Origin: Octopus sinensis
Taxonomy: Eukaryota
Reading direction: 5' to 3'
DNA: 64,000 nt
Assembly (NCBI RefSeq): GCF_006345805.1
Contig: NC_043024.1
Span: 7,812,001 to 7,876,000 of the forward strand
The position numbers and the translations under genes are program-made. Within the stretch, counting starts at the first letter, position 1. Every line of letters begins with the position of its first letter. This document shows positions 8,827 through 47,938 of the stretch, piece by piece. Below the pieces are notes generated by a model, which saw nothing but the letters and a program-made list of their open reading frames with translations, made no database searches and was not told the DNA's origin.

Positions 8827-8987
<161 letters not shown>

Positions 8988-10170: not shown

Positions 10171-10239
<69 letters not shown>

Positions 10240-10305
10240 GGTCCCGGGTTGAGTCGGGGTTAACCACAGTAAATAAGGTACTCAATACATAGCAGAGTAA
10301 ATAAA

Positions 10306-10409
10306 TTTATTTTATAGAAGGAGCTTCTACAGGACTAGAACTGTTTCATTCAAAAATCTTTTTGAATGAAACAGTTCTAGTCCTGTAGAAGCTCCTTCTA
10401 TAAAATAAA
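10306..10409. repeat. Near-perfect 104-bp palindrome (51-bp arms, 2-nt loop)
   Basis: tttattttatagaaggagcttctacagg...caaaaa-tc-tttttg...cctgtagaagctccttctataaaataaa. Confidence 0.9.
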
Positions 10410-13612: not shown

Positions 13613-14093
13613 ACTTAGCTATCACCGTGATCACCGTGACCGACCAGGCTATCAGATGTTGCTACACATCGCTGGTCACAATGCGCTTCGCATTGTTTTA
13701 GCCTTCGAATGACGCCACCCCACTGGCTAAGCGAGCAGGCCAACAGAAGAAAGTGTGATAGAATGTTGTGGCAAAAGAGTACAGCAGGGATCGCCACCAC
13801 CTCCTGCCGGAGCCTCGTGGAGCTTTTAGGTGTTTTCGTTCAATAAACACTCACAATGCCCGGTCTGGGAATTGAAACCGTGATCCTACAACCACGAGTC
13901 TGCTACCCTAACAACTGGGCCATTGCACCTCCGGCTTAGCTATACCTGGTCCCAAATATTCTACCTGTTTTAGATTCAACCTAGTTAGATCTGGTGTGAG
14001 ACACTTAACCTGCAATGTCATTCTAAAACTAAATAATTACATAATTGAAATCTCAAAGCTACAAGATAATGCATGATTAATTCAAAGCAATCA

Positions 14094-16870: not shown

Positions 16871-17115
16871 GACCAAAGACAGATGCTATGAGGGTATAAA
16901 AAGATGCAAACAGGGACACGACTGGTGACACTTTAAAATGAAGAGTAAGACCCCTACCACAAAAGGACCAGCTCTGTCGTTAGGTAAGTTATTGTTGTTG
17001 CTGTTGTTGTTTTGCTCTAGCTCAGCCCTGATCCAACAAACATATGAACAAAGATATTCCATCAATGACCCTCCCACCTTTTTCACTTCATTTTCTCACT
17101 AAAGACTGAGGATGC

Positions 17116-20100: not shown

Positions 20101-20547
20101 GGGTCCTACCTTGGCTTGTACTTACAAAGCAGAAGCTATGATTTGAGGGAGAATTGGCTGCTATTTTGGGGTTCCTACCTTGGCTTGTACTTACAAAGCA
20201 GAAGCTGTGATTTGAGGGAGAATTGGCTGCTGTTTTGGGGTTCCTACCTTGGCTCGTTCTTACAAAGCAGAAGCTGTGATTTGAGGGAGAATTGGCTGCT
20301 ATTTTGGGGTTCCTACCTTGGCTTGTACTTACAAAGCAGAAGCTGTGATTTGAGGGAGAATTGGCTGCTGTTTTGGGGTTCCTACCTTGGCTCGTTCTTA
20401 CAAAGCAGAAGCTGTGATTTGAGGGAGAATTGGCTGCTGTTTTGGGGTTCCTACCTTGGCTCGTACTTACAAAGCAGAAGCTATGATTTGAGGGAGAATT
20501 GGCTGCTGTTTTGGGTCCCTACTTTGGCTCGTACTTACGAAGCAGAA
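17116..20547. repeat. Minisatellite, ~50 tandem copies of a 69-bp unit
   Basis: Unit gatttgagggagaattggctgctattttggggttcctaccttggctcgttcttacaaagcagaagctgt, with no unique spacers. Confidence 0.97.
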
Positions 20548-27268: not shown

Positions 27269-27340
27269 ATGGCACTGAGATCAATATTGGTGACTCTATT
27301 TTTTGCCTACACCTTCTTTGATTATACAGAATCAACTTCG
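27269..27340 (+). CDS. Coding exon 1: signal peptide MALRSILVTLFFAYTFFDYTESTS
   Basis: Acceptor ttttttatatccccag at 27266, then AC ATG (so a 5'UTR exon lies further upstream). Donor TCG|gtaaat, phase 0. Basic-hydrophobic-small residue pattern. Confidence 0.85.
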
Positions 27341-27674
27341 GTAAATATATTGATTTTTTTTATTTTGTCGTTTGTTTTTTTTAATGTTATTTGTTGTAGT
27401 ATTTTGTTATGCCTTTTAAAATCTGTGATTTGAAAAGGTAATATAAAAGGAGAAAGGGGCTCTCCCGTTGGCTTTTATGGGTCTTTTCCACCAGGAACCT
27501 TTCGTAACGCCTCCTCCTATTGAAAGTTTTTCGTTGTTATATTTTCGTTGTTAAACTGCTTTTTACTCGTTTTTTTTCACAAACGGACAAAACCCCTTGT
27601 AACCTTTCGTCCTGTTTTTGTCCCTTTATGTAATAATTGATTTTTGTCAGCCCTTGTGGCCAATAAAAGAATGA

Positions 27675-27724
<50 letters not shown>

Positions 27725-27896
27725 TATTATTATTATTATCTTTATCATTATCATCATCATCATCATCATTATTATTATTATCATTATTATTATTGTTATT
27801 ATTATTATTATTATTACTATTATTATTATTATCTTTATCATCATCATTATTATTATTATCATTATTATTATTATCATTATCATCATCATCATCATT

Positions 27897-27989
<93 letters not shown>

Positions 27990-28035
27990 GTTATTATTAT
28001 CATTATTATTATTATCATCATCATCATCATCATCA

Positions 28036-28077
<42 letters not shown>

Positions 28078-28371
28078 CCTTTCAGGGTCGATGAATTAAG
28101 TACCAGTAAAATACTAGGGTTGATGTTATCAATTATCCCCATCCCTTAAATTTCAGGCCTTGTGCCTATAGTAGAAAGGATTGTTGTTGCTGTTGCTGCT
28201 GCTGTTGTTGTTATTGTTGCATCGAGGTTGATTTTGCCTTTCATCCTTTCAGGGTTGAATAAATAAATACCAGTGAAGTATTGAGGGGCGAGGACGGGGT
28301 CAATGTGGTCGACTTCCCCCTCCCCTCAAAAACTGCTGGCCCAGTGCCAAAAATTTGAAAACCCAATTATG

Positions 28372-28426
<55 letters not shown>

Positions 28427-30177
28427 TTTGTTCTTGCTGTTGTCGCACGCAGGCAAAATCTGGTGTTACCTGCCAATTCAAGGTCTTCCCCAACAACCCA
28501 AATCTCTATTATGAGATAGTATATAGTGGTGGCTACTTGGTGAGACAGTGTCACTTTGGCAGTAAGTTTAGTGTGTCAAGATGTTCCTGCTCCAATAAAA
28601 CCGACACAAAAGCAAAGGGTAAGTCACAGACCTGAGGAATTTTTACCTTAACCCTTAAGTGTTTAAACTGGTCGTATCCAGCCCAAATATTCTAAATGTT
28701 TTATATTCACACTGGCGATATCTAGCCTCTCACACCTAACCTACAATGTAATGCTAAAAATAAACAATTCACGTCATTGAAACCTCAAAGCTGTAAGATA
28801 ATGCATGATTAATTCAAAACAATTTGAGTGAAAAAGTATTACATTTAACCGAGTAATCTGAACACTAAAGTGTTAAGTCGTTTAGCATTCAGAACGTGGC
28901 CGATGCCAGTGCCGCCTAGACTGGCTTCCGTGCTGGTGGTATGTAAAATGCACCATCTGAATCGTGGCTAATGCCAGCGCCACCTTCACTGGCTTCCATG
29001 CTGGTGGCACGTAAAAAGCACCATCCGAATCGTGGCTGATGTCAGCGCCGTCTTGACTGGCTTCCGTGCCGGTGGCACATAAAAAGCACCATCCAAATCG
29101 TGGCCGATACCAGCGCCACCTTGACTGGCTTCCGTGCCGGTGGCACGTAAAATGCACCAATCCAATCGTGGCCGTTGCCAGCCTCGTCTGGCACCTGTGC
29201 TGGTGGCATGTAAAAGGCACCCACTACACTCACGGAGTGGTTGGCGTTAGGAAGGGCATCAAGCTGTAGAAACACTGCAAGATCAGACTGGAGCCTGGTG
29301 CAGCCTCCTGGCTTCCCAGATCCCCGGTCGAACTGTCGAACCCATGATAGCATGGAAACCGGACGTTAAACGATGATGATGATGATTACTTTGTTGAATG
29401 TGATTCTTGTATATTCACATTGTTTTTAATTAATTATGCATTATCTCATAGCTTTCATCATCATCATCATCATCGTTTAACGTCCACTTTCCATGCCAGC
29501 ATGGGTTGGACGATTTTGACTGAGGCCCTTGGTTTGGTGATAAAAGGCTTTCATTTTAAGGTGATCCAAGTTAAAACCTTCCTTCAAGGTTTTATGTAAA
29601 TTTATGGGCCAAACAACTTAATAATCTCTCTTTACTCTTTTACTTGTTTCAGTCATTTGAGTGTGCCCATACTGGAGCACTGCCATTAGTCGAGCAAATC
29701 AGCCCCAGGACTTATTCTTTGTAAGCCTAGTACTTATTCTATCGGTCTCTATTGCCGAACCGCTAAGTTACGGGGACGTAAACACACCAGCATCGGTTGT
29801 CAAGCAATGATGAGGGGACAAACATAGACACACAAACATACACACACACACGTATATATATATATATATATATTTTAATTGATTTGCTTTTCGCGGGAAG
29901 GAAGTTTTCTTCGAAGTATACGTCTCGCTTTTATCCTTCGAAACGTTTAGTAGATGAAACCTTAGCGACTGAAGAAGGGGATTTTTCGTTGTGCTTATTG
30001 TCCTGTATCTCTCCTTTTTTTTTGCTTGTCTTGTTCCTTGGTTTGTGTCTATGTGTTTCGTCTCTCTATGTGTTCGACGTCTTTTTGGTGTCCTGTACAC
30101 ATATATGCGTGTATATGTACATGTAGAGGTATGTACGTACATATATGTTTATATATATGCATATGTTCTATTTTATT

Positions 30178-30212
<35 letters not shown>

Positions 30213-32464
30213 GACGGGCTTCTTTCAGTTTCCATCTACCAAATCCACTCACAAGGCTTTGGTCAGCCCGAGGCTATAATAGAAGACACTTGCCCAAGAT
30301 TCCACGCAGTGGGACTGAACCCGGAACCATGTGGTTCGTAAGCAAGCTACTTACCACACAGCCACTCCTACACCTGTTAATATTGTTAATGTTTGGACAA
30401 TAATTAAACATAAAATTCTGATGGAAGATTTTAATTTAGACCGCTTTAAGACAGCTTCTTTCACAGAACTAGAAATGGTCTTGAGTGGATAGGTATCAAA
30501 AGGGCTTAAAATTACCCCACCGTTATAAGATACTCCCCATAAATGTAATAACAATAATATTTGTACAACTTCACATGACTGTCTTGTTGGAACACTGAAT
30601 GATGTGTTATCATCCTTGAGAGATCCTTTAATAGAGGCACTCAAACGCAGTATTTGGTGTTCTCACTAGACATCCATATTAACCCTTTCGTTACCAACCC
30701 GGCTGAAACCGGCCCAGGCTCTTTAGTATAAATGTCTTGTTTTCATAATTTCTGAATTAAAATCTTCCACCAAACCTTAGTCACAATTAATGTTCCTAAC
30801 ACTAGCTTAATGATAACTAAATTATTTTACTAAATTCTTTATTATATTTAAAGTAATTGAAAGAAACACAGAGCATCTCAACAGAAATATGGTAACAAAA
30901 GGGTTAATAAATGATCAATTTAACCCTTTTGATACTAACCCGGCTGAAACTGGCTCTGGCTCTGTAGTACAAATGTCTTGTTTTCATAAGTTTTGAATTA
31001 AATTCTTCCACCAAACCTTAGTCACAATTTATGTTCCTAACACTAGCTTAATGATAACTAGGTTATTTTACTAAATTCTTTGTTATATTTAACCGTTTCG
31101 TTACCAACCCGGCTGAAACCAGCTCTGGCTCTGTAGTACAAATGTCTTGCTTTTTTTAATTAAAATCTTACACCAAACCTTAGTCACAATTTATGTTCCT
31201 AACACTAGCCGAATGATAACTAAGTTATTTTACTAAATTCTTTGTGATATTTAAAGTAATTGAAAGAAACACAGAGCATCTCAAAATAAATACAGTAACG
31301 AAAGGGTTAATGATAACGATGTTATTTTACTAAATTATTTGTTATATTTGAAATAATTGGAAGAAACACAGAGCATTTCAAAATAAATATGGTAATGAAA
31401 GGGTTAAGTCAGATATGAAGATTACTTTTTAGTACTAATACTGCTCTGTCTTAAATAATTAATATATAAAAGTGAAGTTGTGTGTCTGTCTCCTACGATT
31501 TAGATTCCTAACTACTCCCACATTTTGCGGTGCAGTTTAACCAAAACCGGTTATCTTATAGTCGTGATTCATATTGAGCCCTTCTGGGTATTAGCGCGCG
31601 TCTACGATGAGTCTACAATTTAAAAAAATTTACCATAATAATTTTTTTCCATTTTAATGCATTTTTTTCGCTATTATATAAGGGAAGTAACTCTCTAAAA
31701 ATGTCTACAATGAGTCAACGATTTTTAAAAGAATTTACCATTATTTTTTTCCATTTTTAATGCATTTTTTTGCTATTTTTTGGCTATAACTCTCTAAAAA
31801 TGGTTATATAGTTATTTCCCTTACAAACCCGAGCAACGCCAGGCGATACTGCTAGTAAATAATATTTGTACCTTTATTTTGAAACTAATCAAAAGCAGTT
31901 CTTGTTTTAACAGATGGTTCAGCCAAAAAGAAGATGAAAGGTGCCCAAAAGACAAGTAAATCAGGTTTGGGTTCAAATAAAGCTACACAACACATATTAA
32001 AGACTAAGATCACGATAAAGAAATTTCCGAATCTCCCTCCAGTCACGAGTACCCCAACTGCGAGTACAACAACAAGACGTGGAGGAAAGTTGAAAAAATT
32101 TGCTACCAAGTTGACCCAGATACAATCGGTTGTCCTCACACTAAGTAAGAGCGCCAACAAAAGTGCAGCAGCAACCAACAGCAGCAAGCGTGAACATGGT
32201 AGCCGTGCAGCAATCGCGGAGAAGACAAAGAGTGGTCAAGGCACTCGCACGGCCGAGTTGGCTGCAGAAGTACTTCAGTCACCGAATAACAAGTCTGGGT
32301 TGGTGGTGCTGGACGCAGATACGAGTGCGAGTAGAGAGCGCAGCGCAGAGGCGTCGTCTGCGTCGAATGAATCCGATACAAGTCTGTCAGCATCCGAGGA
32401 AGAAGAGCCTGCGAGCAAAGTTGTGACCACTAAGGCTCCAATTTCAATAAATAAAAGTAAGTTA

Positions 32465-32505
<41 letters not shown>

Positions 32506-33001
32506 CATCATCATCATCATCATCATCATCTTCTTCATCATCATCATCATCACCATGGTCGTCGTCATCATCATCATCATCATCATCACACCATCGTCGT
32601 CATCATCATCATCATCATCAAAACCATCATCATCATTGTCGTCATCATCATCATCATCGTCATCATCATCATCACCATCGTCAACGTCGTCGTCATCGTC
32701 ATCGTCATCATCATCATCATCGTCATCATCATCATCATCATCATCATCATCACCACCATCGTTGTCATCATCATCATCATCATCATCAAAACCATCATCA
32801 TCATTGTCGTCGTCATCACCATCATCATCATCATCACCATCATCAACGTCGTCGTCATCGTCGTCATCATCATCATCATCATCATCATCACCACCATCGT
32901 TGTCATCATCATCATCATCATCATCAAAACCATCATCGTCATCGTCGTCGTCATCACCATCATCATCATCATCACCATCGTCAACGTCGTCGTCATCATG
33001 G

Positions 33002-33036
<35 letters not shown>

Positions 33037-33185
33037 GTCGTCATCATCATCATCATCATCAAAACCATCGTCATCATCGTCGTCGTCGTCATCGTCATCA
33101 TCATCATCATCGTCAACATCGTCGTCATCATCATCATCATCATCGTCATCATCATCATCATCATCATCATCATCACCATCATCAA

Positions 33186-33255
<70 letters not shown>

Positions 33256-33364
33256 GTCATCATCATCATCACCATCGTCAACGTCGTCGTCATCGTCGTC
33301 GTCGTCGTCATCATCATCATCAAAACCATCGTCATCATCGTCGTCGTCATCATCATCATCATTG

Positions 33365-33400
<36 letters not shown>

Positions 33401-33726
33401 CCATCGTCATCGTCGTCGTCGTCGTCATCATCATCATCACCACCACCACCACCACCACCACCACTTTTCCTTGCTTGAATGTTGGACTGAATTTATTGAG
33501 GCAGGGCTTTCTATGGTCAGATGCCATTCCTGTTGCTAAAACTCACATGTTTCCAAGCAAGTTGTTATTTTCCTTGTGACCAATCATTTCTTGCAGAATA
33601 TTGGAAAGGAACGACACTGCTTGTATAACAGTGACACTCATTTACAAATATCATGTGATATTAACACAAGGAGACACAAGCATACGTACCATCACACACA
33701 TACACACACACACATATATACATACA

Positions 33727-33757
<31 letters not shown>

Positions 33758-36360
33758 CTTTCTCTCTCTTTTCCTTGTTTCAGTCATTTGACTGCGGCCA
33801 TGCTGGAGCACCGCCTTTAATCGAGCAACTCGACCCCGGGAATTATTCTTTTGTAAGCCTAGTACTTATTCTATCGGTCTCTTTTGCCGATCCACTAAGT
33901 AACGGGGACGTAAACACACCAGCATCGGTTATCAAGCAATGCTAGGGGGACAAACACACACACACACACATATATATAAACATATATACGACGGGCTTCT
34001 TTCAGTTTCCGTCTACCAAATCCACTCACAAGGCACTTGCCCAAGGTGCCACACAGTGGGACTAAACCCGGAACCATGTGGTTGGTAAGTCCCGGGGTCA
34101 AGTTGCTCGATTAAAGGCGGTGCTCCAGCATGGCCGCAGTCAAATGACTGAAACAAGTAAAAGAGAGAGAGTAATAGTGCAAATAACATGCAAAGTGCAC
34201 GTAGTCTACTAACATCACCAACACCACTAAAGCCTCATCTTTAGTACTTATACTTTTTGTTCTCTTTTTGCTGAACCACTAAGTTACGGGGATGTAAACA
34301 CACCAACATTGGTTGTCAAGCGATGGTGGGGGACACAGAAATCTATACATACATATATCTCTCTATATATAAACGGCAGTTTGTCTGTCTGCGTGTCTGT
34401 GTGTCTGTTTGGTTGTACCCTCACCCTGACCACGGCTTTCAACCGATTCTGATGAAACTTGACACACACATAGCCCAATGTCCTAATTCAAAACTGACGC
34501 AGCGAAAATTTTGAAAAGTTCCCCCAGTTCTGAAAAAAATCGATAAATTCGACATGGGGTCGAGAATCAGAAACACAAACCACAGACTGTCTAGGGGACG
34601 CAACTCGACCTTTTTAACTCTCAAAAAAATTTACCATCATTTTTTTTTCCATTTTTTTGCTAGTTTTTGGCTATAACTCTCTAAAAATGCTTTATAGTTA
34701 TTTCCCTTACAAACCCGAGCAACGCCGGGCGATACTGCTAGTATATATATATAAGCCTCATCCTCATCCACTCATCACTACCACCACACCGATACCACAC
34801 CCTCCATCACAACCAACACCACCACCACCAACACTACCGCTAACATGGACGTAAATTTATCTCATGGTCTCTTTCTCTCTTCTGTTTTTGTGTTGACCAG
34901 CGTGTGCCCTAAATGCCAATGCTGAGAACCCCACCAAATATTACGAGCTGGTTCCTGGACATGGTTATTACATTAGGGATTGCGCTGAGGGATCGGCTTT
35001 CAGCCCGATAGCCTGTGGCTGTACTATTCATGCTAAGAAAGGTAAATGACCAATTTGTTTACTGGTGTGCTTCTGTGTCTGTGTCTGTGTGTGTGCGTGC
35101 AGATGTGTGTGAGTGCACTTCTGTGTGCACTTCAAACAGAAATTTACACATGCATACATATACGCATGGATGGATGGAAGCACTCCATCGGTTACGACGA
35201 CGAGGGTTCCGGTTGATCCGAATCAACGGCACAGCCTGCTCGTGAAATTAACGTGTAAGTGGCTGAGCACTCCACAGACACGTGTACCCTTAACGTGTTC
35301 TCGGGGATATTCAGCGTGACACAGAGAGTGCAAGGCCGGCCCTTTGAAATACAGGTACAACAGAAAGAGGAAGTAGAGTGAGAGAAAGTTGTGGTGAAAG
35401 AGTACAGCAGGGATCACCACCATCCCCTGCAGGAGCACTCCATCGGTTACGACGACGAGGGTTCCGGTTGATCCGAATCAACGGCACAGCCTGCTCGTGA
35501 AATTAACGTGTAAGTGGCTGAGCACTCCACAGACACGTGTACCCTTAACGTAGTTCTCGGGGATATTCAGCGTGACACAGAGAGTGACAAGGCCGGCCCT
35601 TTGAAATACAGGTACAACAGAAAGAGGAAGTAAGAGTGAGAGAAAGTTGTGGTGAAAGAGTACAGCAGGGATCACCACCATCCCCTGCAGGAGCACTCCA
35701 TCGGTTACGACGACGAGGGTTCCGGTTGATCCGAATCAACGGCACAGCCTGCTCGTGAAATTAACGTGTAAGTGGCTGAGCACTCCACAGATACGTGCAC
35801 CCTTAATGTAGTTCTCGGGATATTCAGCGTGACACAGAGATGACAAGGCCGGCCCTTTGAAATACAGGTACAACAGAAACAGGAAGTAAGAGTGAGAGAA
35901 GTTGTGGCGAAAGAGTACAGCAGGGATCACCACCATCCCCTGCCGGAGCCTCGTGGAGCTTTTAGGTGTTTTCGCTCAATAAACACTCACAACGCCCGGT
36001 CTGGGAATCGAAACCGCGATCCTATGACCGCGAGTCCGCTGCCCTAACCACTGGGCCATTGCGCCTCCTAACATATACGCATACATACACACTCACAGAG
36101 GCATGTTTCTGTATGTGATTATTGTGTTTAAACATTTATATAAACGAACATAAGCATGCATACATGTGTGTGTGTGCATACATATATACATATATCCAAT
36201 ATATATATTACATATATATATATATATATACATACTATAGTTATATGCATATGTAGCATGTATGTATGTATGTATGTATGTATGTATGTATGTATGTATG
36301 TGTGTATGTGTGTATGTATGTATGTATGTGTGTGTGTATCTATGTGTGTATGTATACATG

Positions 36361-36394
<34 letters not shown>

Positions 36395-36570
36395 TGTATG
36401 TATGTATATATATGTATGTATGTATATATGTATGTATGTATGTGTGTATGTATGTACGTATGTATGTATGCATACATGTATGTATGTATGTATGTATGTA
36501 TGTATGTGTGTATGTATGTGTGTATGTATGTATGTATGTGTGTGTGTATCTATGTGTGTATGTATACATG

Positions 36571-36604
<34 letters not shown>

Positions 36605-37840
36605 TGTATGTATGTATATGTATATATATGTATGTATGTATATATGTATGTATGTATGTGTGTATGTATGCATGTATGTATGCATGCATGTATGTATGTA
36701 TGTATGCATACATGATGTACGTACATACATACATTTTGGCTTGATTGAGTTAGTTAGTTGCTATTCTCAGTTTTATTTGCAGGGTTTTATATTTGTTTTT
36801 TTTTTGTTTGTATTCTTTTTAATTGGATATGTTTGTTTTTGTTGTTGGTGTAGAAAAAGAGGACAAACCTGAGAGCAAAGAAATGTGGAAGAAACCCCTA
36901 AAGGAAGAACTAGCAACTATAATGCAACCCCCAACCATACTGCCTACAGAAGCTGCTAAAAAATCGGTAAATATATATACAGGCCAGCTCCTGTCAAACT
37001 GGACAACCCATACCTATTTCTTTACTACCCACAAGGGGCTAAACATAGAGGGGACAAACAGGGACAGAGAAATGAATTAAGTCGATTACATCGACCCCAG
37101 TGCGTAACTGGTACTTAATTTATCGACCCGGAAAGGATGAAAGGCAAAGTCGACCTCAGCAGAATTTGAACTCAGAACGTAGTGGCAGACGAAATACCTA
37201 TTTCTTTACTGCCCACAAGGGGCTAAACACAGAGGGGACAAACAAGGACAGACAAACGGATTAAGTCGATTACATTGACCCCAGTGTGTAACTGGTACTT
37301 AATTTATTGACCCCGAAAGGATGAAAGGCAAAGTCGACCTCGGCAGAATTTGAACTCAGAACGTAGCGGCGGACGAAATACCTATTTCTTTACTACCCAC
37401 AAGGGGCTAAACATAGAGGGGACAAACAAGGACAGACAAACGGATTAAGTCGATTACATTGATCCAGTGCGTAACTGGTACTTAATTTATTGACCCCGAA
37501 AGGATGAAAGGCAAAGTCGACCTCGGCGGAATTTGAACTCAGAACGTAACGGCTATGCATTTTGCCCGGCGTGCTAACATTTCTACCAGCTCGTCGCCAT
37601 AACCCGTACCTGCATGGAAGCTGGACATTAAACAATGATGATGATGCAGTTGTTGTTGTTATTAAGGCAATGAGCTGGCAAAATGCTTAGCAATGTCTTG
37701 TCCATCCTCACATTCTGAGGTCAACTTTGCCTTTCATACTTTCGGGGTCAATAAATTAAATACCAGTGAAACATTGGGATTGATGTAATTAACTGGTCCC
37801 CTCCCCAAAAATTTCAGCCCTTGTGCCTATAGTAGAAAGG

Positions 37841-37874
<34 letters not shown>

Positions 37875-39860
37875 GTTTGACTTTTGCTTTACATTTGCTC
37901 AAGTTGGCTCCAAGTCTCACCCAGAGACCTCAAGAGACAACAAGTTGGAAGTTCGTATTGGTGTTATGCCTAGGGTGCCATATATTTGGTTTTGTACATA
38001 GTGTTGTTCTAGAGAATGTTTAAGAAACCATAAGAAAATTATGTTTGTTTTAAAACTTGAGATTACATAGAAAGTATTTTGCATAGGATATGAGCAGTTC
38101 CCATGAGCACTATCTTTTGAATTTCAACCATTTTGGGGTTTCCTGGCTCTGTAGTACAAATGTCTTGTTTTCAAAAGTTCTGAATTAAAATCTTCCACTA
38201 AACCTTAGTCACAATTTATGTTCCTAACACTAGCTGAATGGTAACTAAGTTATTTTACTAAATTCTTTGTTATATTTAAAATTAATTAAAAGAAACACAG
38301 AGCATCTCAATAGAATATGGTAACAAAAGGGTTAACAATGATTAATTTAACCCTTTTGATACCAACCTGTTGAAACAGCCTCTGGCTCTGAGTACAAATG
38401 TCTTGTTTCCATAAGTTTTCAATTCAAATCTTCCACAAACCTTAGTCACAATTTATGTTCCTAACACTAGCTGAATGATAACTAAGTTATTTTACTAAAT
38501 TCTTTGTTATATTTAAAATTAATTAAAAGAAACACAGAGCATCTCAATAGAAATATGGTAACAAAAGGGTTAACAAATGATTAATTTAACCCTTTTGATA
38601 CCAACCTGGTTGAAACAGCCTCTGGCTCTGAGTACAAATGTCTTGTTTCCATAAGTTTTCAATTCAAATCTTCCACCAAACCTTAGTCACAATTTATGTT
38701 CCTAACACTAGCTGAATGATAACTAAGTTATTTTACTAAATTCTTTGTTATATTTAAAATTAATTAAAAGAAACACAGAGCATCTCAATAGAAATATGGT
38801 AACGAAAGGGTTAAGTATATTTTTAATGTTAGTTCTAACTCTTTTTCTTAAATTAATTAATAATACCAAACAAAACAAAATAAAGCTGCCTGACAATATT
38901 GTGAAAATCTAAGATGTTCAGAATGTGAAGAGGAAAATAATCTCTCTCTATATAAACGGCAGTTTGTCTGTGTGTCTGTTAGGTTGTACCCTCACCCTGA
39001 CCACGGCTTTCAACCGATTCTGATGAAACTTGACACACACATAGCCCAATGTCATAATTCAAAACTAACGCAGCGAAAATTTTGAAAAGTTCCCCCAGTT
39101 CTGAAATAAAATCAATAAATTCGACATGGGGTCGACAATCAGAAACACAAACCACAGATGGTCTAGGGGACGCAACTCGACCTTTTTAACCATCAAAAAA
39201 AATTTACCATAATTTTTTTTGGTATTTTTTGGCTATAACTCTCTAAAAATGCTTTATAGTTATTTCCCTTACAAACCCAAGCAACGCCAGGCGATACTGC
39301 TAGTATAATGATAAATGTTCGAAGAAACCAATAAATTAATAGTTTCTTGTCTTTTTCTTGCAGTACGTCTATATACCAGTGTGTCAGCGGAGCTCCTGTG
39401 TTGATGATCCCACAAAATACTTCGAACAAGTACCAGGCCATGGCTTCTATTTAAGATCGTGTCCAAAGGGCACAGCTTTCAACCCCATTCACTGTCAATG
39501 TTCAATACACTATGGAAACTGTAAGGGATATAATTTTTTTTTTTTTTTTTTACTATTTTAATGTTATTTTATTTTAGTTATTTTTCACTTGTCTCTTGTT
39601 TGTTTCAGTCATTGGCCATGCTGGAACACTCTTTACTCTTTTACTTGTTTCAGTCTTTACTCTTTACTCTTTTACTTGACTGCGGCCATGCTGGAGCACC
39701 GCCTTTTAATCGAGCAACTCGACCCCGGGACTTATTCTTTTGTAAGCCCAGTACTTATTCTATCGGTCTCTTTTGCCTAACCGCTAAGTAGCGGGGACAT
39801 AAACACACCAGCATCGGTTGTCAAGCAATGCTAGGGGGACAAACACAAACACACACATGC

Positions 39861-39894
<34 letters not shown>

Positions 39895-41713
39895 GACGGG
39901 CTTCTTTTCAGTTTCCGTCTACCAAATCCACTCACAAGGCTTTGGTCAGCCCGAGGCTATAGTAGAAGACACTTGCCCAAAGTGCCACGCAGTGGGACTG
40001 AACCCAGAACCATGTGGTTGGTAAGCAAGCTACTTACCACACAGCTACTCCTTCACATTACTATGAAAGTTTAAAAAGATTTTTTTTTAAAATTTAAATT
40101 GAAATAAATTGATTCCAGATTCCAGGAAGCTATCAACTACTTCTAGTTTTTCTCCCTGAAATGTGGCAGAAGTTGTTCTCTGCACATTTTCAGTGTTTAT
40201 TGCTCTTGAGCATCTGCCACATACAAAAACTATCTTCCCAGTTAGCTTTCCTTTGATATTGCTGCACCTCTTTTGTGTCCATAGCTTACACTGGGTACAT
40301 CTTAAGTTAAGTTAAGTTAATTTTTTGGCTCAAAAAGCAAAAAGCAAGGCCATGTAGGGGGACATGGAGTTATGTACAGGGAGGATGTTCATGCAAAGAG
40401 TTCAGGCCATTTCTGGTCAAGAGAGACTTTGAACCGAGCAGTCATGGTTCAAAAAGCAAAAAGCAAGGCCATGTAGGGGGACAGGGAGTTATGTACAGGG
40501 AGGATGTTCATGCAAAGAGTTCAGGCCATTTCTGGTCAAGAGAGACTTTGAACCGAGCAGTCATGGTTCAAAAAGCAAAAAGCAAGGCCATGTAGGGGGA
40601 CATGGAGTTATGTACAGGGAGGATGTTCATGCAAAGAGTTCAGGCCATTTCTGGTCAAGAGAAACTTTGAATCGAGCGGTCATCGGCATCTTCACTATCT
40701 CGTCCAGCAGCTTATTCCACGGATCCGCAACCTGGACGGAGAAAGCCCTTCTCCTTCGATTGAGATGAAACCGTCGCAGATAGAGCTAATAGAGTTTCTA
40801 CCTACACCTATTCTACAGATCGATATTGAATGAAGGCATGTAGCTTAGCGGTTAGGGTACTCAGCTCATGAGTTTAAGGTCATGAGTTTGAATCCTAGCA
40901 GAATGTCGTCCTTGAGAAAGACACTAAATTTTACATTGCTCCAGTCCATTCAGCTGGCAAAAATGAGTATCATCTGTTTAGCAAAGGGCCAACCTTGGAA
41001 CATATTTTGTATCATACTGAACCACCCTGAGAACTATGTTAAAATTAAGCATGTTAGCAGGGTGCTGACACACTTGCATGTTAATTTCACAAGCAGGCTC
41101 TTGTACTGACTGGATCAACCCAAACACTCGTCATAACCGACAGAGTGCCTTCATATACAATGAGCTGATAAGAGAAGAGAATAAGCATATATTCTCCACC
41201 GTTGCAATTTCTGGATTCTCAGAACAGTGGTGAACCACTGTTTTTCTCAATAGTTCTGCACCAGGCAAAAAGCTTTCTGTGAGCTTGGTTTGATATTTTG
41301 AATCCCTATTCTTGTTGTATGTGTGTGTGTTTGTGTAGGAGTGGCTGTGTGATAAGTAGCTTGTTTACCAACCACATGGTTCCAGGTTCAGTCCCACTGC
41401 ATGGCACTGTGGGCAAGTGTCTTCTATTATAGCCTCGGGAGGCCAAAGCCTTGTGAGTGGATTTCGGAGACGGAAACTGAAAGAAGCCCGTCGTATGTAT
41501 GTATGTGTGTGTGTATATGTTTGTGTGTCTGTGTTTGTCCCCCCAAAATCTCTTGACAACCGATGCTGGTGTGTTTACATCGCCATAACATAGTAGACCG
41601 ATAGAATAAGTACTAGGCTTACAAAGAATAAGTCGTGGGGTCAATTTGCTCGACTAAAGGTGGTGCTCCAGCATGGCCACAGTCAAATGACTGAAACAAG
41701 TAAAAGAGTAAAA

Positions 41714-41744
<31 letters not shown>

Positions 41745-44542
41745 CTCACACACACATATGAGGGAGTGCTGAAAAGATCCTGGCAGAAGACCTGGTTTGA
41801 GGGCCAACCTTCTGAGTTCTTTTAGAGGGTTTAGAAAAACTGAAGGACCGCTGCAATAAGTGTGTGAATCTTAGAGGGGAATATGTTGAATAAAATCTTA
41901 ATTAACTGATCCTCCTGTATTTTCTTTTACCCAAAGCCAGGAGCTTTTCAGCACCCCCTCATATATGTGTATGTATGTGTGTGTATGGAAGGCTTCAGTA
42001 CAGTTTCCATCTGCCAAATTCACTCACACGTCATTGGTCAGCTTGGAGCTGCAACAGAAGGCATTGCTAAATGTTTTCATTTCTATCCCTGTCTCTCAGC
42101 ACTGATTTTATAATACTTCCGTATTTCAGCTGGTCGAGTGATTTTCAAATTCCGAAACAACGAAGAGGAGGCGGAGGCGGAGGAGAGTAAGAGAAACGAT
42201 GAAGAAAATGATCAAGTGGCTGACGATAATGAGGATAACGCAGGAGAAGAAGAAGAAGAGGAGGAAGAAGAAGAAGAAAGGGAACCAGTAGAAGAAGAGG
42301 AAGGAGAGAGTAAGAAAACCAATGTGGGATCACTGTTGTTAAATTTACTTTCAGCTGCAGAGGTACGTATACATACATTCATATATATATATTTGTGTGT
42401 GCGTGTATATGTGTGTAAATACATATATAAAGGCGGCGAGCTGGCAGAATCGTTAGCACGCCAGGCGAAATGCGTAGCCGTATTTCGTCTGCCGTTACGT
42501 TCAGAGTTCAAATTCCGCCGAGGTCGACTTTGCCTTTCATCCTTTCGGGGTCGATAAATTAAGTACCAGTTACGCACTGAGGTCGATGTAATTGACTTAA
42601 TCCCTTTGTCTGTCCTTGTTTGTCCCCTCTGTGTTTAGACCCTTGTGGGTAGTAAAGAAATAGGTATTTCGTCTGCCATTACCTTCTGAGTTCAAATTCC
42701 GCCGAGGTCGACTTTGCCTTTCATCCTTTCGGGGTCGATAAATTAAGTACCAGTTACGCACTGGGGTTGATGTAATTGACTTAATCCCTTTGTCTGTCCT
42801 TGTTTGTCCTCTCTGTGTTTAGACCCTTGTGGGTAGTAAAGAAATAGGTATTTCGTCTGCCATTACGTTCTGAGTTCAAATTCCACCGAGGTCGACTTTG
42901 CCTTTCATCCTTTCGGGGTCGATAAATTAAGTACCAGTTAAGCACTGGGGTCGATGTAATTGACTTAATCCCTTTGTCTGTCCTTGTTTGTCCCCTCTAT
43001 GTTTAGTCCCTTGTGGGTAGTAAAGAAATAAATATATACATGTGGATTGTTGGCAATTTTTTTTCTCCTCCGTCTTCCTTTTCTCTTGGTCTTTCCACTG
43101 TCTCCTGTTCCTGAAGAAGAGATTTGCTTGAAATGTTAAACAACCTTTCTTTCCTTCCCTGAGCATCTTTTAATACTTTGCATGTACCACGTCCTTGTGT
43201 TTTTTCTGAGGTCGTCAGAGACGGCAGTGAGAATAAGTGATGTGAAAGACAGTGGTGATTGAGGTGGAGGGGAAGGCAACAAAGTCAAAGGTATTGATGG
43301 TGGTGGTGTCAGAAGTCTGAATGATGTGTGTATGGCAGATGTGGTGGTATTAAGAAAATGAATTCAGCGTTCAGTCCCTCATTCTCTCTCTCTTATTATT
43401 ACTCCTACTGCCACCATCAACACTACTACTTTTAATAAAAAACATCATCAACAGTAGAAGTGTCATTGAATAGTCAGAGAGGGGGTCAAAGTGTGACACA
43501 CTGACACAAAAATTAGCTTTTGCATTTATTATATTAGATGGGTGTGTTTGTGTATACGTATGTGTGGCGGCACAATGGCCCAGTGGTTAGGGCAGCGGAC
43601 TCGCGGTAATAGGATCGCGGTTTCGATTTCCAGACTGGGCGTTGTGAGTGTTTATTGAGCGAAAACACCTAAAGCTCCACGAGGCTCCGGCAGGGGATGG
43701 TGGTGATCCCTGCTGTACTCTTTCACCACAACTTTCTCTCACTCTTACTTCCTGTTTCTGTTGTACCTGTATTTCAAAGGGCCGGCCTTGTCACATTCTG
43801 TGTGTCACGCTGAATATCCCCGAGAACTACGTTGAGGGTACACGTGTCTGTGGAGTGCTCAGCCACTTACACGTTAATTTCACGAGCAGGCTGTTCCGTT
43901 GATTCGGATCAACCGGAACCCTCGTCGTCATAACCGACGGAGTGCTTCAAAAAAATGTGTGTATGTAGGTATGTATATGTGTGTGTGTATGTTTGTGTAT
44001 ATAATATATATATATATGTGTGTGTATGTATATTATATATATATATATATATGTATGTATATATGTGGAGGCACGTGGTTTAGTGGTTTCGATTCCTGGA
44101 CCGGGCAATGCGTTTGCGTCCATGAGCAAAACACTTCATTTCACGTTGCTCCAGTCCACTCAGCTGGCAAAAATGAGTAACGCTGCTATGGACTAGCGTC
44201 CCATCCAGCTGGGGAACACATATGCCATTGAAACCAAGAAACCAGGCCCATGAGCCTGGCTAGGCTTTAAAAAGGGGGCATTTATTACTTATTTTTATAT
44301 ATATATGTATGTGTGTGTATATTACATATATATATATATATATATCTGCGTGTGTACCTTTGGCGATTTTGTTTCCTCCGTCTTCCCTTCTTTGGATCTT
44401 TCCTTTTCCTATATTTCTGACGAAGAGCTCCGCTCAAAACGTTAAGCCCTCCTTCTTTCCTGAGCATCCAATAATACTATACTTGTTCCACATCCTCACA
44501 TTGTTGTGTTTTCTCTTTGTGTTTCCATGTTTGGATTAACTT

Positions 44543-44574
<32 letters not shown>

Positions 44575-47500
44575 TATGATTGGCTTATAAATTCACATAT
44601 TTTGAAAAGAAACACGAAAAGGTTATATATTTCTTATTTGTTCTCTTCCAGAGAAAATATGGCAGTTTGTGCAACCTGCAGACTTTCCTAGGTGATTCTA
44701 CCAAATATTACAATCCGATTGCTCGTGTTGGACATAGAGTACTGCACTGTGCCAAAGGCCTGGTATTCAAGTTTGAATACTGCAGATGCGTACGCAAAAA
44801 AGTTACGAGTAAGTGTACTGTATTTTTGCTGTTGTTAGTAACTCTAGGCTGTTTTTTTCTTTCTTTTAAATTTTCAAATCATTCAGGGTTGAGGCATGTT
44901 ACAGCATTGTCACTGGGTTACGGGATTTTGTCCTCCAGTTAAATTGGGTCTGAGCCAAAGATTCTGAAATCAAATGCTGATAGCTAATCAAGGAAGTGAT
45001 TTTATTAATATTAATGGATCTTTTCGGTTTGAACGGCAGTTTTTAACATAATTTCTAGGTAACTAAAAAAATTTTAAACTTCGTATACTGGTAGAATGTG
45101 TTTATAAAACATCTTTTTCTCTTGGCTTTATTGAGAAAATTCTATAGTTTGTGAGATGTTTGTTTTTTTCTTCAATTTCTGCAATTTCAACTAATCACTG
45201 ACGTCTATTGAGGTAAAAAAAACATTGTGCCGTATGAATATGTCCCTGATTTAAGAAACAGATTGGTTTATTTACATTTATGAAGAAAAAAAGATACCCT
45301 TCCCCCTACCCCTAAAATAGATTGAAATGCAATAGATCAAATATTACAATCCGATTGCTCGTGTTGGACATAGAGTACTGCATATAATTATGGGTGACAA
45401 TTTCACATGACACCGCTAGAAAAAACTGCTGTTCAAACCGAAAAGATCCATCTCCTCTTTTGAGGAGAATTAGCTTCTTCAATTTCTGCAATTTCAACCA
45501 ATCAATGACATCCATTGAAGTAAAAAAACATTCTGTGCTGTATGAACATGTCCCTCGTTTAAGAAAGAGATTGGGTTTATTTACATTTGTGAAGAAAAAA
45601 AAAAAAGATACCTTTCCCCTAACCCTAAAATAGATTGAAATGCAATAGATCGATACTAGGGTCATAATTATGGGTGACAATTTCATATGACACCGCTAGA
45701 AAAAACCTCTGTTCAAACCAAAAACATCCATATTAATTTTTAATCCTATTTTTGACTGTGTGTGTATGGAGGATATCAAACTTTAATCACAACAGTTCTA
45801 TATTTAAGAGATGAGGAATTATGTACACTATTTACATTTGACGGACATTTCACCTCATCTTGTTTTTTTGTTAACACGTTTCAGCTGATATACGCTCCAG
45901 CTTTCATGAAGGCCGGAAGGTCTATCAGCCGAAACGTTGTGTTAACAACAAACAAGATGAGGACAAATATCCGTCAAATGTAAATAATGTATTTAAACAC
46001 GACATTTGTTTCCACACCACAAACCAGCTTTAATTTGTTGAGTTTAGGAGTGGCTGTGTGGTATGTAGCTTGCTAACCAACCACATGGTTCTGGGTTCAG
46101 TCCCACTGCGTGGCATCTTGGGCGTCTTCTGCTATAGCCCCCGGCCGACCAATGCCTTGTGAGTGGATTTGGTAGACAGAAACTGGAAGAAGCCTGTCGT
46201 ATATATGTATGCGTGTGTGTGTTTGTGTGTCTGTCCCCCTAGTATTGCTTGACAACCAATGCTGGTGTGTTTACATCCCCGTCACTTAGCAGTTCGGCAA
46301 AAGAGATCGATGGAATAAGTACTGGGCTTACAAAGAATAAGCCCCGGGGTTGATTTGCTCGACTAAAGGCGGTGCTCCAGCATGGCTGCAGTCAAATGAC
46401 TGAAACAAGTAAAAGAGTATACCATTATACAAGATTACTGTTGAAAAGCATTCCGCTATACAGTAATTCTAAAGAACGATCTTGTATTAAGGTATATGAA
46501 TATAAAACTCAGAAACTTAAACCTGGTGAGTGGCTCAGAAAAAGATGTGATCTATTAAAGCCTGGTATCCTCCATCATGTTCTATCATTCTTATAATATA
46601 TATATATGTGGAGGCGCAATGGCCCAGTGGTTAGGGCAGCGGACTCGCGGTTTCGATTCCCAGACCGGGCGTTGTGAGTGTTTATTGAGCGAAAACACCT
46701 AAAGCTCCACGAGGCTCTGGCAGGGGGTGGTGGCAATCCCTGCTGTACTCTTTCGCCACAACTCTCTCTCACTCTTTCTTTTGTTGGCCTGCTCGCTTAG
46801 CCAGTGGGGTGGCATCATTTGAAGGCTAAAACAATGCTAACGTATTGTCACCAGCGATGTGTAACATCTGATGGCCTGGTCGGTCACGTGATAATATATA
46901 TACAGTATATGTATACACACACACATATATGTAAGTGTGTATATACTCTCAGTCTTTTACTCGTTTCAATCATTTGACTTTGGCCATGCTGGAGCAACGC
47001 TTTTAGTCGAGGAAATCGACCCCAGGACTTATTCTTTGTAAGCCTAGTCCTTATTCTATTGGTCGCTTTTGCTGAACCGCTAATGTTACGGTGACATAAA
47101 CACACCAGCATCGGTTTATCAAGCAATGTTGGGGGGACAAACATATATATATCTGCTCTGGCCCCTGTGCCGGTGGCACGTAACAAACACCCGCTACACT
47201 CACGGAGTGGTTCGCATTAGGAAGGGCATCCAGCTGTAGAAACAATCCCAGATCAGACTGGAGCATGGTGCAGCCTTCTGGCTTCCCAGACCCCGGTCGA
47301 ACCGTCCAACCCATGCCAACATGGAAAACGGACGTTAAATGATAATGATGAATGAATGATGAATAATGACAAACTTCTTTCAGTTTCCATCTACCAAATC
47401 CACTCACAAGGCTTTGGTTGGCCCGAGGCTATAGTACAAGACACTTGCCCAAGGTGCCACGCCGTGGGACTGAACCCGGAACCATGTGGTTGGTAAACAA

Positions 47501-47786
47501 GCTACTTACCACAAAGCCACATACATATGGATCTTATGATGATGATTTGGAAGTTATTTGGTTGCTAATTCTAGCAGTTTTAACAATTACATAAATACTC
47601 CCTCCTCACTCCACGACATACCAGAATAGAAAATGAGAAGTGTCAACATTCAATAAATCTAAGTAGATTATGTTAATGTATGATATAATATTTCAATGTT
47701 GAATATTTCATTAAAAGCTACACATTTTTTTTGTTTTCATGCGAACAGTTCACTGGAAGAAAATCCTACCATACATTTATATCTAA
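27269..47786 (+). CDS. Spliced gene, join(27269..27340,28453..28618,31914..32456,34901..35041,36854..36966,39364..39520,42130..42362,44652..44808,47749..47786): 539-aa secreted protein with four 4-Cys chitin-binding type-2 (ChtBD2/PIF-like)-like modules and charged low-complexity linkers
   Basis: Manual exon chaining. All 8 introns are GT-AG with polypyrimidine tracts; intron phases 0,1,1,1,0,1,0,1 are all compatible. Exon lengths 72+166+543+141+113+157+233+157+38=1620 nt with no internal stop. N-terminal hydrophobic signal peptide, four aligned Cys modules, AATAAA 147 nt after the stop. The domain family is assigned from motif resemblance, not a search. Confidence 0.88.
27420..28077 (+). mobile_element. 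CR1 3'UTR copy whose tail runs into a ~400-bp (ATT/CAT)n microsatellite
   Basis: 27420-27670 is the reverse-complement homolog of 7200-7460; AATAAA followed by the (ATT)n/(CAT)n expansion. Confidence 0.75.
28453..28618 (+). CDS. Coding exon 2: Cys module 1 (AKSGVTCQFKVFPNNPNLYYEIVYSGGYLVRQCHFGSKFSVSRCSCSNKTDTKAK)
   Basis: cgcag| acceptor, G|gtaagt donor, phase 0-1, open frame, aligns with modules 2-4. Confidence 0.9.
30683..31403. mobile_element. Cluster of piggyBac-like MITEs (TTAA target sites, CCCTTT(C/T)G TIR), tandem and nested
   Basis: ttaa|ccctttcgttacc ... ggtaacaaaaggg|ttaa (30683-30903), further units at 30924-31403. Related copies at 38150-38815 (3 tandem), 48632-49508 (longer) and 62678-62888. 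Confidence 0.8.
31914..32456 (+). CDS. Coding exon 3: 181-codon linker, Lys-rich N-half and Ser/Glu-rich C-half
   Basis: ttgttttaacag| acceptor, AAA A|gtaagt donor, phase 1-1. Matches the unique part of ORF 31934..33478. Confidence 0.88.
32462..33465. repeat. (CA)n followed by a ~1-kb degenerate (CAT/CGT)n tract in intron 3
   Basis: Begins immediately after the exon-3 donor. Confidence 0.95.
34901..35041 (+). CDS. Coding exon 4: Cys module 2 (TCALNANAENPTKYYELVPGHGYYIRDCAEGSAFSPIACGCTIHAKK)
   Basis: Pyrimidine tract plus gaccag| acceptor, G|gtaaat donor, phase 1-1, 141 nt. Confidence 0.9.
35180..36068 (-). mobile_element. tRNA-derived SINE family C with a triplicated ~255-bp 3' segment
   Basis: Head (minus strand) ggaggcgcaatggcccagtggttagggcagcggactcgcgg at ~36068; three tandem units start ~35185, ~35445, ~35696. 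Single copies at 13615-13932(-), 43567-43948(+), 46610-46890(+). Confidence 0.85.
36165..36730. repeat. (TATG)n/(TG)n microsatellite in intron 4
   Basis: Direct inspection. Confidence 0.95.
36854..36966 (+). CDS. Coding exon 5: linker EKEDKPESKEMWKKPLKEELATIMQPPTILPTEAAKKS
   Basis: gttggtgtag| acceptor, TCG|gtaaat donor, phase 1-0 bridging exons 4 and 6. Confidence 0.8.
39364..39520 (+). CDS. Coding exon 6: Cys module 3 (YVYIPVCQRSSCVDDPTKYFEQVPGHGFYLRSCPKGTAFNPIHCQCSIHYGN)
   Basis: ctttttcttgcag| acceptor, T|gtaagg donor, phase 0-1, 157 nt. Confidence 0.9.
40300..40790 (-). mobile_element. CR1-clade LINE 3' end with (TTAAC)n tail and a triplicated 119-bp terminal segment
   Basis: Minus-strand translation LYLRRFHLNRRRRAFSVQVADPWNKL; units start at 40331, 40450 and 40569. 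Confidence 0.85.
42130..42362 (+). CDS. Coding exon 7: highly acidic linker with a run of 10 Glu
   Basis: tatttcag| acceptor, GAG|gtacgt donor, phase 1-0. Matches ORF 42138..42557 up to SAAE. Confidence 0.88.
44652..44808 (+). CDS. Coding exon 8: Cys module 4 (RKYGSLCNLQTFLGDSTKYYNPIARVGHRVLHCAKGLVFKFEYCRCVRKKVT)
   Basis: ttctcttccag| acceptor, A|gtaagt donor, phase 0-1, 157 nt (same length as exon 6). Confidence 0.9.
45829..45986. repeat. Palindromic element (~75-bp arms) in intron 8, resembling a head-to-head Penelope-like terminus
   Basis: tatttacatttgacgg...tcatga...ccgtcaaatgtaaata; contains cagccgaaacgt. Confidence 0.75.
47749..47786 (+). CDS. Probable terminal coding exon: (I)HWKKILPYIYI*
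   Basis: T-tract plus gcgaacag| acceptor, phase 1 compatible, TAA at 47784-47786, unique 3'UTR-like sequence followed by AATAAA. Confidence 0.7.
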
Positions 47787-47932: not shown

Positions 47933-47938
47933 AATAAA
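47933..47938 (+). terminator. Polyadenylation signal AATAAA of the Cys-module gene
   Basis: First AATAAA downstream of the predicted stop; followed by T/GT-rich sequence at ~47960-48020. Confidence 0.6.

Follow-up and report, generated by a model that had tools for sequence, protein, structure and literature searches.

LOC118768312, whose isoform X2 has nine coding exons, is a gene on the forward strand of a 64-kb stretch of AT-rich, repeat-laden eukaryotic DNA from Octopus sinensis (64,000 nucleotides; RefSeq assembly GCF_006345805.1, contig NC_043024.1, positions 7,812,001 to 7,876,000). We refer to the whole of this stretch as the window and count coordinates from its first base. An earlier note on this DNA, made from its letters alone, had proposed that a chain of short exons encodes a secreted protein with four chitin-binding-like modules, each of four cysteines, joined by charge-segregated linkers. 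We find that the gene model is real, conserved in octopus and already present in RefSeq as uncharacterised, and we argue below that its product is probably a matrix protein built from a reduced version of the CBM14/peritrophin-A fold. The following features underlie the argument; Ka/Ks denotes the ratio of nonsynonymous to synonymous divergence, and pLDDT the predicted local distance difference test score of an AlphaFold2 (AF2) model.

16895 to 16902, + strand: TATA-like box TATAAAAA, about 36 nt upstream of the start codon of isoform X1; a putative promoter element, recognised by its letters only
16938 to 16983, + strand: alternative first coding exon of isoform X1, MKSKTPTTKGPALSL plus the first base of an Asp codon; donor GT at 16984-16985, acceptor 2 nt before 27269
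27269 to 27340, + strand: exon 1 of isoform X2, start codon and putative signal peptide MALRSILVTLFFAYTFFDYTESTS; 24 of 24 amino acids (aa) the same in O. bimaculoides
28453 to 28618, + strand: exon 2, module 1 (core 28471-28590); Ka/Ks 0.08 against O. bimaculoides; AF2 pLDDT 78, predicted CBM14 fold
31914 to 32456, + strand: exon 3, linker 1, Lys-rich in its first half and Ser/Thr/Glu-rich in its second; four of the six N-x-S/T sequons, with a fifth across the exon 3/4 junction; Ka/Ks 0.29
34901 to 35041, + strand: exon 4, module 2 (core 34903-35022); Ka/Ks 0.14
36854 to 36966, + strand: exon 5, linker 2, mixed Lys/Glu/Pro; 84% aa identity to O. bimaculoides
39364 to 39520, + strand: exon 6, module 3 (core 39382-39501), with a fifth Cys; weak Pfam CBM_14 match (E=0.036); AF2 pLDDT 86, predicted CBM14 fold
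42130 to 42362, + strand: exon 7, linker 3 (41% Asp+Glu), with the conserved SLLLNLLSAAE at its end; junction and motif kept in O. bimaculoides XP_052833104.1
44652 to 44808, + strand: exon 8, module 4 (core 44670-44789), basic; 83% aa identity to O. bimaculoides
47749 to 47786, + strand: exon 9, basic-aromatic tail IHWKKILPYIYI and TAA stop; tail 12 of 12 aa the same in O. bimaculoides
47933 to 47938, + strand: AATAAA, candidate polyadenylation signal judged by its motif, 147 nt past the stop codon

Rebuilt from open frames and splice sites, the nine exons join through GT-AG introns throughout into a 1620-nt coding sequence for 539 aa. The protein ends in RKKVTIHWKKILPYIYI, with the stop codon at 47784-47786, and RefSeq XP_036370423.1 ("uncharacterized protein LOC118768312 isoform X2") matches it end to end with 100% identity. 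Through an exact protein match the window is also located on chromosome record CM016886.1 of assembly GCA_006345805.1. The nine-exon chain put forward in the earlier note is thereby borne out, while its description of the gene as invisible was too strong, the same model being in RefSeq. As to the extent of the gene, the exons between 27269 and 47786 stand, but the start does not: the coding exon at 16938-16983, from which isoform X1 (RefSeq XP_036370422.1, 555 aa) gains MKSKTPTTKGPALSL, had been overlooked, and with it the locus starts some 10 kb before 27269. This upstream exon is also found in the O. vulgaris model CAI9741649.1. The start codon of isoform X2, for its part, sits in a good Kozak context (GACATGG). 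At exon 7 there are three candidate donors, of which only the one at 42363 (GTACGT) preserves the frame of module 4 and yields 539 aa; the alternatives are strong-looking, phase 1 GTAAGA sites at 42187 and 42310, both within the acidic exon. The O. vulgaris model (406 aa) differs at precisely this point, using the donor at 42309/42310, frameshifting exon 8 and dropping modules 1 and 4, which could be either true alternative splicing or an annotation error.

Eight of these nine exons can be recovered in O. bimaculoides, in collinear order. The position of exon 6, which carries module 3, is taken up by a 629-N assembly gap (8628-9256 of the CM046627.1 stretch examined), and because of this gap RefSeq splits the orthologue into two models, one of 400 aa and one of 148 aa (LOC106882050). 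Both the exon 7-8 and the exon 8-9 junctions are reproduced in XP_052833104.1. Since the introns, too, align at 80-90% between the two species, a contrast between exon and intron conservation is unusable as coding evidence, and we relied on Ka/Ks instead. This ratio is 0.31 overall, falling to 0.21 for the modules and rising to 0.36 for the linkers, and there is not a single amino acid change in the 24 residues of the signal-peptide exon or the 12 residues of the tail. LOC118768312 is under purifying selection.

These observations bear on the view that the model is a prediction artefact or a decaying pseudogene, its exon chain fortuitous or its true product the truncated O. vulgaris form. The frameshifted CAI9741649.1, without modules 1 and 4, and the want of an exact transcript-derived open reading frame (ORF) on record would both fit such a view. 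Yet all four modules are intact, their pattern is matched nowhere in shuffled sequence (see below), Ka/Ks stands at 0.31 with signal-peptide and tail exons identical in protein, and two splice junctions recur in the O. bimaculoides RefSeq model. Selection and the conservation of junctions across species strongly disfavour this explanation, which we consider exceedingly improbable.

A six-frame regular-expression scan of the window finds the pattern C-x25-C-x2-G-x2-F-x4-C-x-C exactly four times, always on the + strand (28471-28590, 34903-35022, 39382-39501 and 44670-44789), against a mean of 0.0 matches in 100 block-shuffled windows. The motif [PS]-[TN]-[KL]-Y-[YF] recurs at an equal offset in all four modules, as PNLYY, PTKYY, PTKYF and STKYY in modules 1 to 4, respectively. 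On both counts the regularity reported from the letters is exact. A sensitive tblastn search for further module copies or paralogues in the window found none except a 45-bp fragment of exon 8, and we reject additional modules there. The fragment is a perfect copy of exon-8 bases 44702-44746 (encoding KYYNPIARVGHRVLH) that lies in intron 8 at 45338-45382, about 590 bp downstream of the original.

How do these modules relate to the canonical domain? CBM14 follows the spacing C1-X15-C2-X5-C3-X9-C4-X12-C5-X5-9-C6, with disulfides C1-C3, C2-C6 and C4-C5 (PMC10619976). The distance from the second to the fourth Cys of the octopus modules equals the canonical C4-X12-C5, and hhalign pairs these residues in the same way, whereas a P-T-K-Y-Y-E-L stretch stands in for the 'dC-x-k-Y-x-q-C' that holds canonical C2 and C3. 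Canonical C2, C3 and C6 are thus absent, and the third octopus Cys, at C5-2, is extra. Because of the missing residues two of the three canonical disulfides (C1-C3 and C2-C6) must be lost, and C4-C5 is the sole one that could be retained, only C4 and C5 being at canonical spacing. Presumably the first Cys would pair with the third and the second with the fourth, the latter bond being the canonical C4-C5. The proposed reduction from six cysteines to four, ending in CxC, applies to all four modules, with the proviso that module 3 has a fifth, Cys357 (39397-39399, in CQRSSCVDD), which is also present in the O. vulgaris model. The odd Cys count of the protein (17) that results from module 3 may possibly signify a free thiol or an intermolecular disulfide. 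A further regularity lies just beyond the modules: a T/S-I-H motif follows the last Cys of module 2 (CTIHAKK, residues 302-307, about 35023-35040) and module 3 (CSIHY, residues 392-396, about 39502-39516), and VTIHWKK spans the exon 8/9 junction after module 4 (residues 526-533, about 44802-44808 and 47749-47765). By this resemblance the conserved tail may be a displaced version of the segment that follows the other modules.

Three lines of comparison bear on descent from CBM14. First, the Pfam CBM_14 profile (PF01607) matches module 3 at 14.6 bits, on the C-x2-G-x2-F stretch, and does not match modules 1, 2 and 4. Second, when a profile of 83 four-Cys modules is aligned with 16 Pfam-verified canonical CBM14 domains, hhalign returns a probability of 96% (E=4.9e-9, 34 columns), compared to 0.3% for a control alignment with EGF domains of the same proteins; the canonical set came from the module-profile search's own matches, a choice that favours similarity. 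Homology at the sequence level is also apparent from the 29 CBM_14-bearing proteins that a module profile recovers (see below). Third, AF2 models of module 1 (pLDDT 78, from a 4-sequence alignment) and module 3 (pLDDT 86, from a 66-sequence alignment) both show a hairpin and a two-stranded sheet, and the predicted structures display the distorted beta-sandwich of a three- and a two-stranded sheet that defines CBM14. In Foldseek searches of the PDB, a check suggested in the earlier note, the top nine matches of module 1 and the top 14 of module 3 are all of the CBM14 fold, among them CHIT1, Avr4 with a chitin hexamer, tachycitin, Der p 23, Blo t 12 and EHEP, with query-normalised template modelling scores of 0.6-0.7 and a probability of 0.9-1.0 for most, while other folds reach 0.2 at best. 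The small size of the domain keeps the E-values at a modest 0.04-1. A sequence search of the PDB with the module profile gave nothing meaningful. Taken together, the kinship with ChtBD2/CBM14 that had been read from a few residues emerges with good support: the modules are, as far as these models and profiles can tell, a reduced four-Cys derivative of the CBM14/peritrophin-A fold.

The module is not confined to this gene. An exhaustive search with a hidden Markov model (HMM) of the four modules yields 51 proteins at E<=0.001, of which 29 carry Pfam CBM_14, five VWA and five Laminin_G_3. The best matches are tandem arrays of the same four-Cys module, with 4 to 19 copies separated by low-complexity linkers. 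They comprise Sepia pharaonis CAE1286147.1 (8 modules) and CAE1286153.1 (4 modules), two unnamed proteins of 700 aa, P0004 (8 modules, the closest multi-module relative) and P0005 (11 modules), O. bimaculoides LOC106876448, O. sinensis LOC115217256, O. vulgaris CAI9729694.1 and 'mucin-5AC-like' proteins of Mytilus and Mizuhopecten; one O. vulgaris relative holds 19 modules. All five relatives whose sequences were read begin with signal peptides, and P0004 passes the Pfam CBM_14 gathering score with 48.4 bits summed over its eight modules. The cuttlefish relatives derive from RNA-seq of whole Sepia esculenta larvae, which is uninformative on tissue, and P0005 and a 90%-cluster-mate of the Sepia protein come from one shared run. 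P0004 (10001-12109 of its stretch) and CAE1286153.1 are uninterrupted, intronless ORFs, unlike LOC118768312, where each module has an exon to itself. In Sepia pharaonis two called genes lie 1 kb apart (10001-11155 and 12101-13386 in stretch coordinates), the neighbour being a candidate member of the family.

The same module also occurs in Pif-like proteins. Those of Mytilus, Haliotis, Sinanodonta and Solemya have one or two copies (the Mytilus ones are named 'protein PIF-like'), and in bivalves and gastropods the module is placed between a canonical CBM_14 domain and LamG. In Mytilus edulis XP_071145361.1, for example, VWA covers residues 33-197, CBM_14 277-327 and the four-Cys module about 391-434; LamG comes after the module in the Solemya and Sinanodonta relatives. 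The Mytilus module is 45-48% identical to octopus modules 1-3, a level of similarity also seen among the octopus modules themselves. In cephalopods, one Sepia esculenta protein combines two modules with a weak Laminin_G_3 match (E=6e-5, sub-threshold in Pfam), and proteomics has detected LamG3/Pif-like proteins in the Argonauta eggcase and the Nautilus shell (bioRxiv 10.1101/2021.07.10.451900). In the Pif/BMSP literature the module is known as the 'CB-like domain' (PMC11291548). On sequence grounds it is widespread in molluscs and homologous to that domain, so the likeness to molluscan PIF-like proteins drawn in the earlier note was correct and its suggestion of a possibly uncharacterised family overstated. 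The domains that typify Pif, by contrast, are missing: Pfam finds no VWA, canonical CBM_14 or LamG in the protein, and tblastn of Pif-like proteins against both strands of the 64-kb window matches only the four modules. Hidden VWA or LamG exons can be rejected within this window. In particular, no LamG lies in the 16 kb downstream of the gene, O. bimaculoides has kept both the tail and its stop codon, and the AATAAA follows soon after. The gene hence does not continue into an ordinary Pif-like one.

Between and around the modules the protein is segregated by charge. The first half of linker 1 has 19 Lys/Arg residues and a single Asp/Glu, and the linker as a whole is 27% Ser+Thr; linker 2 mixes 21% Lys+Arg, 21% Asp+Glu and 13% Pro; and linker 3 is 41% Asp+Glu. 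Net charge amounts to +16 in linker 1, -24 in linker 3 and +11 in module 4 plus tail. Six N-x-S/T sequons occur, at residues 72, 161, 168, 205, 231 and 259. Sequons and charge segregation are therefore as they had been described. By composition the long low-complexity linkers look disordered. The mature form would have about 515 aa, 56.8 kDa, an isoelectric point (pI) of 8.7 and 17 Cys. Its precursor has just one hydrophobic segment, residues 1-17, and since this stretch is N-terminal and homologues have clear signal peptides, secretion, likewise anticipated from the letters, is likely; the product would then reside in the extracellular matrix.

Such a composition invites two alternative roles. 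One is protection: as a peritrophin- or mucin-like barrier, the protein would cross-link chitin and mucus in some soft epithelium, either chitin-lined or mucous (for instance the gut cuticle, oesophagus, skin or egg envelope), and play no part in hard tissue. In layout the protein mirrors insect peritrophins and intestinal mucins, with a putative signal peptide, CBM14-type modules in tandem and Ser/Thr-rich linkers bearing sequons; linker 1, with its 27% Ser+Thr and six sequons in or around it, fits well, and some relatives have been auto-named 'mucin-5AC-like'. Just one linker is mucin-like, though, and the scenario shares every doubt about chitin binding that we raise below, leaving it unlikely, if far from negligible. 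The other is that of a matrix protein of mineralised or hard tissue (beak, radula, stylet, statolith or sucker lining), whose acidic linker would bind Ca2+ and nucleate or shape mineral on a chitin scaffold, much like Pif. The module is, after all, shared with shell-matrix proteins of the Pif-like and LamG3/Pif-like kinds, Asp and Glu make up 41% of linker 3, and the Asp/Ser/Glu-rich linkers of the cuttlefish relatives are typical of acidic matrix proteins. Against this, the octopus has no mineralised shell, the protein has neither the VWA nor the LamG regions seen in Pif and related proteins, its overall pI of 8.7 is not acidic, and the linkers of octopus paralogues and of the 'mucin-5AC-like' mussel and scallop relatives are mucin-like rather than acidic. 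A templating role thus strikes us as distinctly unlikely.

The reading that we favour, with a confidence only slightly better than even, is that LOC118768312 is a secreted matrix protein whose four reduced CBM14 modules bridge polysaccharide, most probably chitin, in a multivalent fashion, with the charged linkers serving as spacers. Each module would bind a polysaccharide fibre via conserved aromatics of its central beta-hairpin, and with four modules per chain, fibres could be bridged. The charged linkers would set the spacing, retain water and ions and perhaps attract one another; where partly glycosylated, they would help to hydrate the network. Ligand, cross-linking mechanism and tissue are what we infer, and chitin cross-linking by the modules is our best guess from their sequence. 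Pointing in this direction, the central hairpin carries conserved aromatics across 82 modules of the family (Tyr at C4-14 in 53, Trp at C4-5 in 46), alongside a conserved Arg at C4-2 and a Gly-Thr-x-Phe after C4. The hairpin aromatics are candidate ligand contacts.

Several observations caution against this reading. Binding of chitin by CHIT1 needs Trp465, at C5+2 (PMC4844120), and in Avr4 the contacts are made by Trp100, Asp102 and Tyr103 in the C-terminal subdomain (PMC6128652). The corresponding C5+2 residues of the octopus modules are N, I, I and R, and across the family this position is aromatic in only 6 of the 82 modules. Three canonical cysteines are gone and one is added. Proposed as a check, the search against PF01607 did produce a match, in module 3, but the whole protein scores 14.7 bits (E=0.034), below the gathering threshold of 22.1 bits, and the hhalign result carries the bias noted above. 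Transcript assemblies on record contain no ORF encoding the exact 539-aa protein, and the O. vulgaris annotation is a shorter model without the signal peptide. EHEP and Der p 23 share the CBM14 fold without binding chitin (PMC10619976), so the fold itself is no proof of chitin binding.

The modules might also have kept the CBM14 fold and switched ligand, to polyphenols, another glycan or a protein partner, by analogy with EHEP, which binds phlorotannin, and Der p 23. EHEP is in fact the best Foldseek match of the module 3 model, the more confident of the two (29% identity, with a root-mean-square deviation of 1.2 A over 41 columns), the Trp of the canonical site has disappeared, and CBM14 domains in general do not conserve the residues that contact chitin (PMC10619976). 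Conversely, the EHEP domains have the full six cysteines, the conserved hairpin aromatics would suit stacking against a glycan, and in Pif-like proteins the module always neighbours a canonical chitin-binding domain, hinting that both serve one matrix. We regard a change of ligand as improbable, albeit deserving of real weight, and retain polysaccharide bridging as the preferred explanation.

One can push polysaccharide bridging further. The four-Cys 'Pif CB-like' module might be its own mollusc-wide domain family, as yet without a Pfam model, which cephalopods expanded into stand-alone tandem proteins; LOC118768312 would then be a block polyampholyte whose oppositely charged linkers drive self-association or coacervation on a chitin scaffold, a Pif-derived route to non-mineralised chitinous tissue in a shell-less octopus. 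As a package this is speculative, and we would not bet on it, though it is not far-fetched.

The surroundings of the gene are rich in repeats. A 69-bp satellite of about 50 tandem copies (94% matches) fills 17116-20547 in the first intron of isoform X1, where it creates long spurious ORFs (SRSCDLRENWLLFWGSYLG...). Long (ATT)n/(ATC)n microsatellites adjoin exons at 27675-28077, ending about 375 bp before the exon 2 acceptor, and at 32504-33439, starting about 50 bp past the exon 3 donor; with the latter, the frame of exon 3 remains open to 33478, giving a misleading ORF of 514 aa. Tandem duplications of two to three copies with units of 119-258 bp lie in introns at 35179-35949, 37010-37553, 38143-38814, 40326-40683 and 42480-43030, and many dispersed copies resembling short interspersed nuclear elements are found in introns as well. 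The 184-bp unit occurs in opposite orientations in introns 5 and 7. Upstream of the gene, ORFs at 7594-8280 (- strand) and 12551-13613 (+ strand) look like fragments of a retrotransposon reverse transcriptase, with a YADD motif at about 12.7 kb. An Rfam scan of the window found nothing.

Nothing here is categorically new: the model is in RefSeq and the module type had already been noticed in Pif proteins. What appears to be undescribed are stand-alone tandem arrays of the reduced module in shelled and shell-less cephalopods, the particular cysteine mapping together with loss of the canonical Trp, and the block-polyampholyte linkers of LOC118768312. A full-text literature search with the names of the loci and their accessions gave no paper that mentions them, and it turned up no experimental studies of the multi-module relatives. 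At present this is an uncharacterised, ordinary-looking matrix gene of moderate interest to specialists on molluscan matrices. If the module proves to be a working glycan binder, this would explain a domain carried in the Pif/BMSP literature merely as 'CB-like', show that molluscs deploy it alone, in tandem arrays, in shelled and shell-less animals alike, and connect shell-matrix proteins to the chitinous tissues that the octopus leaves unmineralised, such as its beak, radula and stylets and the linings of gut and suckers. In that case the module, a small chitin-binding scaffold of four Cys that comes with its own charged spacers, would also be a candidate building block for biomaterials. If it does not bind chitin, we would be looking at another reuse of the CBM14 fold for a different ligand, as in EHEP.

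Insect peritrophins and intestinal mucins consist of tandem peritrophin-A domains with mucin linkers. The octopus protein resembles them in its putative signal peptide and in having CBM14-type modules in tandem, spaced by low-complexity linkers of which at least one is Ser/Thr-rich with sequons, and both architectures suggest multivalent cross-linking; it differs in that its modules are of the reduced four-Cys kind and two of its three linkers are polyampholyte or acidic. AeIMUC1 is an example of an intestinal mucin mentioned in PMC10619976. EHEP of Aplysia kurodai (PDB 8IN3, 8IN6) is likewise a secreted molluscan protein made of CBM14-fold domains only, but its three six-Cys peritrophin-A domains form a compact triangle and bind phlorotannin rather than chitin (PMC10619976), and it has no long charged linkers. 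With CBM14 proper, as in CHIT1, tachycitin and Avr4, the octopus modules have in common the predicted fold, a high profile probability, the C-x2-G-x2-F segment and the C4-X12-C5 spacing, and CHIT1 even has an extra Cys of its own, in a CxCC motif near C5 (PMC4844120). They depart from it in having four cysteines instead of six, the extra one at C5-2, no conserved Trp at C5+2 and a sub-threshold Pfam score. The multi-module relatives resemble LOC118768312 in their tandem four-Cys modules and low-complexity linkers, whose make-up differs, being Asp/Ser/Glu-rich in cuttlefish and Pro/Glu/Thr-rich in the O. bimaculoides paralogue that was read. A final comparison is with the 'CB-like' domain of Pif, BMSP and LamG3/Pif-like proteins, which are also secreted molluscan matrix proteins and follow the same C-x24/25-C-x2-G-x2-[FY]-x4-C-x-C. 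There, one module, or two in some cases, is flanked by some of VWA, canonical CBM_14 and Laminin_G_3, whereas the octopus protein has four modules, none of these partners, and long charge-segregated linkers in their place.

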